Shown one piece after another: positions 59,501-63,910 of a stretch of 64,000 bases of DNA. The DNA lies in NCBI GenBank assembly GCA_977030845.1, contig OZ365112.1:11346001-11410000 (forward strand), written 5' to 3'. Below the pieces are notes generated by a model. The model saw only the letters and a program-made list of their open reading frames with translations, was not told where the DNA came from and searched no databases. Position 1 is the stretch's first letter. Every line of letters starts with the position of its first letter. Origin of the DNA: Fimbriosthenelais zetlandica (taxonomy: Eukaryota). The position numbers and the translations under genes are program-made.

Positions 59501-62500
59501 CTCGGTCACTGCCAGCTTGCCCAATGCATCACTGGTCGTACCCCCGGCTGCTATGACCATGAACACCACTATACCATTCGCTGGTAGTGCCATCAGCAGA
59601 CAGGCAAGGCGACTTTACGTGGGTAACATACCATTCGGTGTGACGGAGGTAAGAAATCATCTATTCAAACACCGGGGTTCATTCCATAGTTCGTTACATT
59701 ATGAAATGTTTATAATGTGAAATAGATGGTTAGATTTCTTTGTAGTAACTACGAAATATTTTACATATTTATTTGGAATTGGATGTGAAATTACCATCTG
59801 TAATTTCTCACAGTGAAGCTTAAATAGTGGATAAGTTATTGAATTGGTAGTTTAGGTACTACCCATGGTAATTTACCGTATTTATGATATCCCTTGTCTA
59901 TTAATTTTCCCCTTGCTCCAGGAGATGATGATGGACTTCTTCAATACCCAGATGAAGATGGCTGGCCTTGCACAGGCTGAAGGCAACCCTGTTATTGCCT
60001 GTCAAGTCAACCTGGACAAAAACTTTGCTTTCCTCGAGGTAGGTTTTCTCTCAATTCCTAACCCGTTATATACAAAATATTTATTGTATGGTCTATTACA
60101 GAAGTTCTTAGGGGTCATATTCGAACGTACGATTTTGTATTGGGTTATTTATCATTTTCTTCTTTATTTATGATGGCCACAGACCCAGATATATAGTATT
60201 TAGGTCTTATTTTGTATGGAAAATAATTTTTAAGAAATTGTCTTGGTGTTTCAGTTCCGCTCAGTAGATGAGACGACTCAAGCGATGGCCTTTGATGGGA
60301 TTAACTTCCAAGGACAGTCGCTGAAAATCCGCCGGCCGCGCGATTACCAACCATTGCCTGGCATGGCCGAGACTCCATCCGTCGCTGTCCCAGGTACGAT
60401 CATTTTCCATCTCTCCCTACTCCAAAACCCCATACAAAGCTACATAATTATCATAAATAGCCGCTCTAGAATTCCTAGATACACCGAATTTAAGTTTTGA
60501 AGCAGAAACGAGGAAGTGATTTAGCATAAATGTTGTCTTCTGTTGACAGCCCAGCTCTGTATGATTTTATCCGAGTTTGATTAAACAAATGTCTGCTTTC
60601 CACCCTCTTTGATTTTAAGCTAGGAAGTCAATAGTAGTATTGTCTACTGACAAGGAGAATTAATGGTCCGGACATTTTATTCCACACTGCGTAAATCGCC
60701 ACTCGGGCTATGGACGCAGTACCGGGATGGGTTCGTTGCACTATTGCATTTCCCCCCCTCTCCTTGAAAAGAGGGTCCACCACCTCTTGACTATAAAGGA
60801 AGGTGTAAACTGAGATAGGATGTGTCATTTTGTTATGCTATGTTTTTAATGTCATGTACAGGAATAGGATGCAGAGAAAAAAAACAACTATTTCATTCCA
60901 GGTGTTGTGTCCACAGTAGTTCAAGATTCTCCACACAAGATCTTCATCGGCGGACTTCCCAACTACCTCAATGAGGACCAGGTAATTGCCTAGTTTCTTT
61001 TCCCCTGGAGGACAGTGGTGGCACAAAGGCCCAGGAGGCAAACCAAGGCCGGCTTTGTACCGTGCCCTCACAGTATGTCTCTGGCTTTATACATAGGACA
61101 TCAAGCCTTAATTTGTGGCTATGTTCTATCAGACTTCTATGGTCCTACTCTCTTTCTCTCTTTTTCCCCACACCCCTCACCAGCCACCACTTCCCCATAT
61201 ACAGGACTAGTCCCTGCGCCACCAAACATCTGGAGAGGACGCCGCGAGATTCTCTTGCAGGGTTCTCTTCCAGCAATAGTTTGTTTCAGCTTTTCTTCAC
61301 CCTTTTGTAAAATATAAAGTTTGAAAAAAATGCTTCATTCAGGGACAGATATTTAAAAATATGGGAATTTTCCTTTTACTGGGAGGATATATATAGGGAG
61401 TGTGATTGTGAGTGTGTTCTATAGGAGGGACAGGAGGGGCAGATAGAACTTTGCACCTGTCAGGTAAGAACGTAACGGCCACTCTTCCTTCACACGGGGC
61501 CCACCTCCCCTCACGTCTCCACCGCCGAGGACAAAAAAAAAAAATTAAAAACTAGTCAAGGCAAAATTGGCAAAATAAACAGGAGAAATTCCGACCCCAG
61601 TCTGTATAAGACTATATTAGAATAATTGTCAAATATTGGCACTACGCAGCAACTTTCGGAATTGATAGGCGAAAAATTTGGCTTTCTATACATTAGATGA
61701 GAAAGGCTATTTCTTTTCAGCCCTTTGTTTCAGCTAATGGAAGCTATTATCCTCTTAGCAAGGATAAGGGAAGAGACATCTTCGAAATACAAATTTTCTC
61801 TCCTATACCCAAATTCCAGGTTATCTTTTTCAGTCTTCATTCGATTAGTCCTAAGGACGAGATGTCCTGCTCTTGGACTAGGAAGTCGTTTAAGCTCTCG
61901 GGGGAAAAACCATCCGGCTTTGACTTGCCGTGGTTCAATTTTGGTGCTGTCATTTTTCCCCAAGCGTTACATTGTGAAATTGACACCTACTGCATGAATA
62001 AGCTAAAAGCAAATTAATTCTCTCCCTCTCTCCAACAAAATTCTTTTTTTGGTAGAGGACACTTTTGTCTTGGTGCGTGTGAACTTGACCCAGAGCAGTA
62101 ATTCCTTACAGGCGACCAAAAAACCAGTATGGTACATGACTAGTTGTTGCGACATACTTATAATTTTTTTCTATTTCTTCCCATTTTAATTCCCTAGCTT
62201 AGGGGAAGAGGGTGAACCCCTAACAAGTTACAATAGTAAACACAACCAAAACCTGTATATTGAATGCCAATCAGTGGAGACAGGCAAGTGGCTTTCTATT
62301 TTGGGGATACACAGTGATGGAATGCCTGGATGTGAAAGTTGTGTTTCTGGGTAGGCGACCTGTTTCCCAGTCTCTCCATCCCAGTTTCACCGAAAAATAT
62401 CTCTTACCAAACAAAATTGGGTTCTTAAAGCATTTTTTCACGACTTATTTGACATTTCTGGCTTGATGTGTGTATTTTGAGTCCTGAACACACGGGTATA

Positions 62501-63910
62501 ACTGTGGTGTGCCTGTCAAACAGGTCTTTCTACCTCGGAGAGAATGTTTGAATGCAAGATCACAAAAAACCCCGGGATTAAACTGAGTAGAAATCTTGGC
62601 TTAAAGTGGCTCTCTCTCCTCTAAAACCTTCAATATTTAATGATATATGTAGACTCTCTATCAATAGATAAGCCCTGAATATCCATAGACCTAGCACATA
62701 GTCCAGGTGAGTATACCCTCTGATATATTGCTATACCAGGAACCTATGTTAATCTCGGGTTTGGACCTATTTGCAGGTTAAGGAGCTTCTAACATCATTT
62801 GGACCACTGAAGGCCTTCAATCTGGTGAAAGACTCGGGAACTGGCCTCTCTAAAGGTTATGCTTTCTGTGAATATGTCGACCCTTCAGTCACTGACCAGG
62901 TAGGTTTCAACTTCCCCATTCATAGGATTCAATCTTAATCAAATTCCAAAATTTTGTGTAATAGATTTGTCCTCTTCCTGATGAATTTACTGAAGAAAAC
63001 ATTTGTTTCAGGCTTGCGCTGGCTTGAACGGAATGCAGCTTGGAGACAAGAAACTTATCGTGCAGCGTGCTAGCGTTGGGGCGAAGAATGCCCAGAATGT
63101 AAGTACATCTTTCTCATGTAGATTCTCATAAATACTCACTCCAATGTTGATTTTAAGAATATTTTACTTATCATTTAATGTGTTTTTTTTTACAGAACCA
63201 AACACCTGTGCAGATCCAGATCCCAGGCCTGAACATGGCCCAGGTCCAGGGCTCGGGTGTACCTACAGAAGTACTGTGTCTGATGAACATGGTGCTACCC
63301 GAGGAGCTGGAGGATGAAGAGGAATACGAAGGTAAGAATACATTCATACAACATTACACTAGCGATGTAAGCTCTACATACTCCCTATCAGACACTGCCT
63401 GTGCTCAATATGACAGGAAAATCTAAACTAGAGTGATCATCGAACTTGTATCATCAAATAAACTCTCATAGAATTCTATGGTAATATAGGTGACATTGAA
63501 TATTAATGAGCATTAAATGTTTTATTTCAGATATTCTGGAGGATGTTCGTGAGGAGTGTGGCAAGTACGGAGTACTGAAGAGTCTGGAAATTCCGAGACC
63601 AATCAAAGGTGTGGAGGTACCTGGCTGTGGAAAGGTGGGTAGATCACTTCTTTACCATCTGAGATATATTTGAGATTATATTTAATTTGGGCTGTATAAT
63701 TCAAATCCAATGGAGATGTTGCCGGCAATTTGGTACCCCTACAAACATATTGACTCAAAGGTTCGTTTTTTATTGCAGATATTCTTGGAATTCAACTCGA
63801 TAATAGACAGCCAAAAGGCTCAGCAAGCTCTCAGTGGACGAAAGTTCTCCAACCGCGTTGTCGTTACTTCATTTTACGATCCTGACAAATACCACCGCAG
63901 AGAGTTCTAA
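56527..63910 (+). CDS. U2AF2: Splicing factor U2AF large subunit (U2AF65): RS domain, ULM, RRM1, RRM2, UHM; 460 aa without and 500 aa with six microexons
   Basis: Core exons 56527-56563, 57462-57621, 57919-58034 (alternative donor 58028), 59497-59648, 59922-60038, 60255-60393, 60902-60981, 62777-62899, 63012-63098, 63196-63331, 63531-63634, 63779-63910; [66 protein letters not shown]. Confidence 0.97.
58157..58183 (+). CDS. U2AF2: U2AF2 candidate microexon 1 (27 nt, (A/T)PSGTLPLQ)
   Basis: TTTTTTCTTCATCCACAG| ... AAG|GTATTT; phase 1-1, no stop. Confidence 0.7.
58379..58399 (+). CDS. U2AF2: U2AF2 candidate microexon 2 (21 nt, DQFAGAV)
   Basis: TTTGTCTATTTCAG| ... TTG|GTATGT; phase 1-1. Confidence 0.75.
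58617..58643 (+). CDS. U2AF2: U2AF2 candidate microexon 3 (27 nt, APPPPLPVP)
   Basis: CCTAAC branch-like site, TTATTGTTTCAG| ... CTG|GTAAGT; phase 1-1. Confidence 0.8.
58855..58866 (+). CDS. U2AF2: U2AF2 candidate microexon 4 (12 nt, EAFQ)
   Basis: TTTGTTATTTTAG|AGGCGTTCCAAG|GTGAAG; weaker donor; 10/12 identical to microexon 6. Confidence 0.6.
59155..59175 (+). CDS. U2AF2: U2AF2 candidate microexon 5 (21 nt, EPPPGDL)
   Basis: TTTTATTATTTCAG| ... TAG|GTACGT; phase 1-1. Confidence 0.75.
   Translation, partial: NRPQAI
59362..59373 (+). CDS. U2AF2: U2AF2 candidate microexon 6 (12 nt, EPFQ)
   Basis: TTTTTTCTTTTACAG|AGCCTTTCCAAG|GTAAAT; phase 1-1. Confidence 0.75.
61184..61463 (+). other. Candidate poison cassette exon in the U2AF2 intron
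   Basis: Long pyrimidine tract 61147-61180, acceptors after 61183 and 61204, in-frame TAG 61208-61210, donor CAG|GTAAGA after 61463. Confidence 0.5.

Follow-up and report, generated by a model that had tools for sequence, protein, structure and literature searches.

The 64,000-nucleotide stretch of Fimbriosthenelais zetlandica DNA described here (contig OZ365112.1, positions 11,346,001 to 11,410,000 of the forward strand, in the following simply called the window and numbered from its first letter) carries the gene of the splicing factor U2AF2 on its + strand, at about 56.5-63.9 kb. Joining open stretches at consensus splice sites gave a gene model of 12 exons that encodes, in an unbroken frame, a U2AF2 of 458 amino acids with an RS domain, two RRMs and a C-terminal UHM. 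The subject of this analysis is intron 7 of this gene, which, as judged from its comparison with orthologous introns, hosts an ancient cassette poison exon at positions 62198-62283, i.e. a non-coding exon with a premature stop.

Intron 7 had been singled out in an initial annotation of the window as an intron of 1795 nt that is the longest of the gene and interrupts RRM2, and this description was borne out by the gene model and by the RRM_1 profile. The next-longest interval, modelled as one intron, spans 1468 nt (58029-59496). Exon 8 corresponds to Pfam RRM_1 profile positions 16-50, and in a full-length relative the ...NYLNDDQ/VKELL junction falls at approximately profile position 15 of the second RRM; thus, RRM2 is interrupted by intron 7. 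If the intron were retained, translation would read VIA and then a stop. The U2AF2 closest to that of the window is the one of scallop, with 82.7% identity, whereas arthropod and vertebrate proteins reach 68-77%, in keeping with a lophotrochozoan origin of the sequence.

The poison exon and the signals that bound it are listed in Table 1, together with the other features of the intron. Its acceptor, a TAG ending at 62197, is one of the twelve splice-site look-alikes that had been listed for this intron in the initial annotation, and its pyrimidine tract, with 17 pyrimidines in 20 positions, is the richest among the acceptors of the gene. A second AG follows 5 nt downstream, at 62202. The exon opens with the purine-rich sequence GGGGAAGAGGG, and its in-frame TGA precedes the last exon junction by more than 50 nt. 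No TTTCAG is found within 62198-62283, and the TTTCAG motifs of the intron are located 370-914 nt upstream of it. The acceptor tract of exon 8 is comparatively G/T-rich and pyrimidine-poor both in the window (62754-62776) and in the metagenome contig L068 (2870-2897); the tract of the poison exon is strong by contrast.

Table 1. Features of U2AF2 intron 7 and its flanking exons in the window. Donor scores were obtained with a rough donor matrix of our own.
Feature	Position	Strand	Description	Supporting observation
U2AF2 exon 7	60902-60981	+	start of RRM2, ends ...NYLNEDQ, phase 0	translation, gene model; conserved in all relatives
Intron 7	60982-62776	+	1795 nt, GT-AG, from GTAATT to TTTGCAG	longest of the gene
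First look-alike cluster	61140-61342	+	AG ends 61183, 61204, 61260, 61273, 61289, 61342	not alignable to relatives
Consensus-like cryptic donor CAG/GTAAGA	61461-61469 (donor 61464)	+	3' end of candidate exon 61184-61463	score 11.2, equals the best real donor of the gene
Second look-alike cluster	61696-61848	+	AG ends 61720, 61733, 61833; three TTTCAG	
Acceptor region of the poison exon	62152-62197	+	branch-point-like TACTTAT, pyrimidine tract core TTTCTTCCC, acceptor TAG	blastn to L068 and L075; alignments
Poison exon (predicted)	62198-62283	+	86 nt, frame-shifting, reads LRGRG then stop	homologous exon with the same bounding signals in 8 genomic loci
In-frame TGA	62213-62215	+	codon 6 of the poison exon	five exon junctions downstream
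Poison-exon donor	62284-62289	+	GC-type GCAAGT (AG/GCAAGT)	AGGCAAGT invariant in 8/8 genomic sequences
Look-alikes downstream of the poison exon	62354-62384	+	AG ends 62370, 62384	
Perfect consensus donor CAG/GTGAGT	62704-62712 (donor 62707)	+	70 nt before exon 8	score 12.2
U2AF2 exon 8	62777-62899	+	RNP1 part of RRM2	acceptor tract comparatively pyrimidine-poor, 12/20

The conservation of the exon was followed in relatives. Protein representatives searched with exon 6 returned many U2AF2 fragments, and metagenome and metatranscriptome contigs scanned with an alignment of exons 4-7 yielded 80 loci. At the genomic level the comparison covers eight loci, namely the window, four metagenome contigs (L068, L075, L066 and L067), the scallop Ylistrum balloti (L088), the spider Parasteatoda tepidariorum (L089) and the louse Menopon gallinae (L092). 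When intron 7 of the window was compared by blastn to all loci, the sole significant matches were located in intron 7 of L068 (86.5% over 52 nt, E of about 1e-9) and of L075 (75% over 65 nt), at the acceptor of the poison exon. The aligned conserved parts consist of a branch-point-like TACTNAT, the tract core TTTCTTCCC, the acceptor in the form YAG/CNYAG/G and about 20 nt of exon including the stop; the body of the exon is variable and is followed by the GC-type donor AG/GCAAGT. The metagenome contigs L066 and L067 are more divergent, and in their intron 7 a poison exon with the AG/GCAAGT donor is present as well. A recognisable poison exon with the same donor could also be identified in intron 7 of the scallop, the spider and the louse.

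In ten homologues the exon measures 60, 68, 70, 86, 86, 90, 92, 100, 101 and 119 nt. The stop stands at codon 6 or 7 in seven of the ten and at codon 27 in L066; the exons of L067 and of the louse have no internal stop, and those of L066, L067 and the louse are all frame-shifting. Altogether, each of the ten homologues gives either a stop or a frameshift. Because the exon is found in the window, in scallop, in spider and in insects, it dates back, as far as homology of sequence can tell, at least to the divergence of lophotrochozoans and arthropods. The intron-poor orthologues of the louse, L066 and L067 have kept intron 7, and no other intron of theirs comes near it in length; this fits an intron that is maintained for its contents.

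Several details of the acceptor vary between the loci. Tandem AGs 5 nt apart (YAG/CNYAG/G) occur in seven of the eight genomic loci, and the louse acceptor reads CAG/CCAAAG, in which the spacing is 6 nt. Directly after the second AG stands GTATGT in L066 and L067 and GTATCG in the insect contig L090, in a manner that resembles recursive splice sites. The window has GGGAAG at this place, and the reading as a recursive splice site is therefore inapplicable there. A different situation is seen in a group of arthropod-like metagenome contigs (L012-L017 and L021), apparently genomic, in which exons 4 to 8 are contiguous, so that intron 7, together with the predicted poison exon, has apparently been lost in some arthropod lineages.

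Transcripts and protein models of relatives add information on the use of the exon. In the mRNA contig L009, which is otherwise fully spliced, 68 nt are inserted precisely at the junction of exons 7 and 8; the sixth codon of this insert is a TGA in frame, and its start matches window positions 62196-62216. In the insect RNA contig L090 (Logan assembly), the insert between exons 7 and 8 is 100 nt long and reads LRYRG followed by a stop. At the protein level, the tail RRLRAW of a spider UniRef entry is the exact translation of the spider exon, the tail LRYRG of a termite protein matches the exon translation, and the louse gene model ends within the poison exon. Several further U2AF2 fragments run from ...NEDQ straight into non-homologous sequence. 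One of these (P0006) derives from the metatranscriptome contig L002, in which all upstream introns are spliced and the sequence continues past exon 7 into GTATGT....

The initial annotation had suggested a negative feedback element or a detained intron. Contigs of relatives do retain intron 7 or include the poison exon: among transcript contigs with a single interruption, intron 7 is retained in L002 and L027, and the exon is included in L009; L050 possibly retains intron 7 too. However, other introns can be interrupted as well, namely intron 6 in L043 and intron 8 in L054, with L079 as a possible further case, and these are few contigs from mixed taxa. Other isoforms were also seen in relatives. 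The Hemiptera products P0255 and P0260 skip exon 8 in frame (NEDQ/AIAGLNG), with removal of the RRM2 core; the mRNA contig L043 keeps intron 6, and L054 runs on past exon 8.

The remainder of the intron was analysed for acceptor look-alikes. The initial annotation had counted at least 12 pyrimidine-tract/YAG sites, four of them TTTCAG, and all 12 AGs are indeed present; counted from the G of the AG, positions -13 to -3 of each include no fewer than 8 pyrimidines out of 11. The TTTCAG sites are those with AG ends at 61289, 61720, 61733 and 61833. We defined look-alikes as a YAG preceded by at least 7, 8 or 9 pyrimidines in 11 positions, which gave 31, 23 and 11 sites in intron 7, compared to 23, 13 and 6 expected from dinucleotide-preserving shuffles (P = 0.025, 0.005 and 0.025, respectively). 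The genome background consisted of 1830 sliding windows of the size of the intron on both strands, taken from 60 kb of the window and 40 kb elsewhere in the genome. Against this size-matched background, the site density of intron 7 is higher, and the intron ranks in the top 4.4%, 0.1% and 0.2% at the three thresholds and in the top 1.6% for TTTCAG. When set against the other introns of the same gene, from which real acceptors were excluded, intron 7 reaches 12.9 sites per kb as opposed to 5.2 (binomial P = 0.0045), and the four TTTCAG of intron 7 (0.95 expected) stand against none in the other introns of U2AF2.

The look-alike enrichment is thus real and amounts to about 2-2.5 fold. It appears over shuffles, background windows and other introns alike, but the statement that the intron is packed with decoys is too strong for an excess of this size. 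The antisense strand, too, is somewhat elevated. Since the intron had been picked after the whole window was read, the excess by itself would be a weak finding.

Orthologous introns extend the picture. TTTCAG is the most frequent hexamer of intron 7 in L068, with 9 observed and 1.2 expected from shuffles, and in L066, with 7 observed and 0.8 expected. In L075 there are 6 (1.5 expected) and in L050 there are 3 (0.3 expected); the scallop has 5 and the louse 6, and the counts are 0 in the spider, 0 in L081 and 1 in L067. Pooled over nine introns, 33 TTTCAG were observed versus 6.9 expected (P of about 7e-13), with almost none on the antisense strands. Enrichment over the other introns of the same gene (at least 8 of 11 pyrimidines) was found in the scallop, at about 1.9 fold (P = 0.03), and in the louse, at about 3.5 fold (P = 0.008). 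None of these clusters is a tandem repeat. We regard the look-alike array as labile, in that it tends to be present where the exon is without being strictly required, and its members as candidate decoys.

Cross-species conservation, as raised in the initial annotation, has two sides: the acceptor and the exon of the predicted poison exon are kept across phyla, but the other 11 listed sites are not. Two further splice-site combinations of the intron may be mentioned. The candidate exon 61184-61463 has a strong donor and was considered as the conserved element, but finds no support as such, since blastn showed it to be conserved in none of the relatives. The perfect consensus donor near exon 8 was not seen in L068, L066 and L067; together with the upstream YAGs at 62667 and 62694, donor 62707 could delimit a tiny stop-containing exon or a nested mini-intron.

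Regarding the nature of intron 7 as a whole, a search of the genome of the species returned the intron itself alone, so that it is single copy at the sensitivity of that search. Given this single match, and trivial short arrays as the sole output of Tandem Repeats Finder, an origin from a repeat or transposon was rejected. A family search of the intron against Rfam gave no family, and a match to SNORA26 was dismissed because it lies on the minus strand and below threshold (E = 0.59).

Taking these observations together, we hold it to be probable, with considerable room for doubt, that intron 7 contains an ancient poison exon through which U2AF exerts negative feedback on U2AF2 output, with the look-alikes as an auxiliary array. 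By the general rules of nonsense-mediated decay, inclusion of the exon would yield either a decay substrate or a truncated protein that lacks a complete RRM2 or the UHM, and hence less U2AF2; a transcript with retained intron 7 would be likewise unproductive. The anatomy of the exon suggests U2AF itself as the most likely controller, in that more U2AF would give a better definition of the poison exon. The weak GC donor would otherwise leave the exon mostly skipped, and together these properties would form a negative feedback loop. Inclusion is expected to be sensitive to the level of U2AF because a very strong, conserved acceptor is paired with a donor that is weak in every lineage. The other pyrimidine-tract/YAG and TTTCAG sites may serve as an auxiliary, fast-evolving array of candidate U2AF-binding sites that tunes the switch or promotes retention, and this is the least secure step of the mechanism. 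The initial annotation had proposed a U2AF-sensing feedback element. What stands of it is a conserved device for unproductive splicing that mRNAs of relatives include, but the listed decoys beyond 62197 are not conserved. In human cells, knockdown of U2AF2 reduces the inclusion of the poison exons of RBM39 and FUS (PMC13075997). For human U2AF2 itself there is a candidate poison exon of low confidence from ENCODE data (PMC6547761, with a supplement that gives no coordinates).

Several observations weigh against this interpretation. When intron 7 is compared with all loci, no relative has an aligned counterpart to any of the remaining 11 sites of the list, and the place of the look-alike clusters differs between loci: the exon follows them in the window, L068 and L075 and precedes them in L066. 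There is no look-alike excess in the spider and no TTTCAG excess in L067 and L081, and the antisense strand of the window intron is itself somewhat enriched, with 15 sites. The purine-rich start GGGGAAGAGGG would suit control by an activator of the SR or Tra2 type equally well. The single bird locus, that of pigeon, has a GC-rich intron 7 of 636 nt without AGGCAAG or a recognisable exon. Finally, inclusion of the exon in F. zetlandica is deduced from its relatives, and nonsense-mediated decay and dependence on U2AF dose are, for all of these species, predictions.

Three other explanations may be weighed. In the first, the poison exon is real but governed by other factors, be it SR or Tra2-like proteins that act on the purine-rich start or hnRNPs, and the extra sites are a functionless by-product of the composition of a long, patchy intron. 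In its favour are the enhancer-like character of the conserved exon start, the lack of conservation of the decoy sites, an enrichment in the window of no more than 2-2.5 fold with a raised antisense strand, and the spider, which has the exon in the absence of a decoy excess. On the other hand, in two other species no hexamer of the orthologous intron is as frequent as TTTCAG, the pooled excess of which is highly significant, the enrichment over other introns of the same gene recurs in scallop and louse, and the acceptor tract of the poison exon is both the strongest of the gene and conserved. Control by other factors is in our view possible, yet rather unlikely. By comparison, the view that intron 7 is an ordinary long intron with chance splice-site look-alikes and nothing functional in it can draw on the statistics of the window, each of which is modest by itself (P 0.005-0.04), and on the choice of the intron after the whole window was read. 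It fails at the exon, since in all 8 loci, which belong to several phyla, a homologous acceptor has AGGCAAGT at a distance of 60-119 nt on its downstream side, and the poison exon is included exactly in mRNAs; chance is already contradicted for the exon, and we give such an explanation next to no credence.

Alternatively, the main event could be a detained or retained intron, in which U2AF-bound pseudo-acceptors stall splicing and the transcript is kept in the nucleus, as is said of C. elegans uaf-1, with the cassette exon being secondary. Contigs of relatives that retain intron 7 after removal of all upstream introns (L002, and also L027 and possibly L050) would agree with this, as would the many insect products and one vertebrate product in the databases that read ...NEDQ straight into GT.... 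U2AF2 is also able to promote intron retention in human long non-coding RNAs (PMC12934665), and decoy sites of U2AF2 are documented (PMC5932609). The counts are small, though, and L043 and L054 retain neighbouring introns too; moreover, pre-mRNA is a frequent component of assemblies made from total or poly(A) RNA, and the conserved sequence is the cassette exon and not the array. We consider detention as the main event improbable, and return to the feedback poison exon as the reading that we favour.

Some observations concern the gene model and the window outside intron 7. Exon 1 of the model (56527-56563) is tentative, being a guess from a short open reading frame with a good donor, and the resulting N-terminus is unlike that of relatives; L002, for example, begins with MDPEALNGEGGE. 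mRNAs of relatives (e.g. L002, 306-408) encode an extra Pro/Ala-rich linker that is unmatched in the modelled exons, and it is the modelled intron 58029-59496 that is concerned. Upstream of U2AF2, two near-identical copies of about 0.55 kb are found at about 52540-53090 and 53930-54480, approximately 1.39 kb apart and with identical stop-to-stop translations, which amounts to a local direct duplication. A dispersed repeat occurs at about 48300-48440, 55700-55880 and 56050-56200, thus also just upstream of the U2AF2 start, with a GC content of about 0.48 and the shared translated motif ...EDSGTKDFQDGRRV.... Further upstream, positions 45211-47163 form one open frame of about 650 residues that encodes a BTB/BACK/Kelch protein, the best database relative of which is 46% identical.

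The predicted exon may be compared with several known systems. C. elegans uaf-1 reportedly has a stop-containing alternative exon 3 with repeated UUUUCAG/R. The exon described here resembles it in the gene family, in being a stop-containing alternative exon and in the many copies of the species' own 3' splice-site consensus within the regulated region. It differs in that the look-alikes lie in the intron around the exon and not inside it, so that one defining feature of exon 3 is missing. A more far-reaching idea is that U2AF2 of protostomes, and perhaps also of lineages older than these, carries an ancient self-sensing module in the RRM2 intron, in which a poison exon with an invariant weak GC donor and a TTTCAG array of fast turnover would act as a sensor of U2AF, and from which the uaf-1 exon would be derived. 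We put this forward tentatively and with more doubt than conviction.

GC-AG introns are linked to alternative splicing, and here also a weak GC donor, of otherwise perfect consensus (AG/GCAAGT), flanks an alternative exon. What sets the present case apart is that none of the 8 loci, with molluscs, chelicerates and insects among them, has lost the GC, which argues for selection for donor weakness and not for a tolerated variant. The poison exons of SR proteins, TRA2B, RBM39 and SMNDC1 are likewise non-coding cassette exons with a premature stop inside a conserved intron of a splicing-factor gene (PMC4379411, PMC11357089, PMC10477243). Both they and the U2AF2 exon are conserved far above the neighbouring intron and have a presumed role in homeostatic feedback. 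The present exon is distinguished by its host, U2AF2 of protostomes, and by a short and variable body in which the acceptor region, the first 20 nt or so and the invariant GC donor are what is conserved. The decoys of human U2AF2 are largely derived from Alu elements and were defined by individual-nucleotide crosslinking and immunoprecipitation, iCLIP (PMC5932609). The window sites are similar in being pyrimidine-tract/AG motifs away from real 3' splice sites, to which U2AF might bind with an effect on how exons are defined; unlike the human decoys, they are known as sequence motifs alone and lie in a single-copy intron. Neither the protostome U2AF2 exon nor its invariant GC donor was found described in the literature searched, which is not proof of novelty. 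The kind of poison exon is one already known.

U2AF2 recognises most 3' splice sites, so that its dosage shapes splicing across the transcriptome. The control of its level is poorly documented outside nematodes, and the human evidence found amounts to the one low-confidence candidate exon. For genome annotation, the exon explains truncated 'hypothetical protein' models of termite, louse and spider that end in ...NEDQ and a few more residues. Its donor represents a natural experiment, in which a weak GC donor has been preserved for hundreds of millions of years. That a lophotrochozoan worm shares the acceptor and the GC donor with a scallop, a spider and insects makes this a very old and concrete element that is small enough to be tested.

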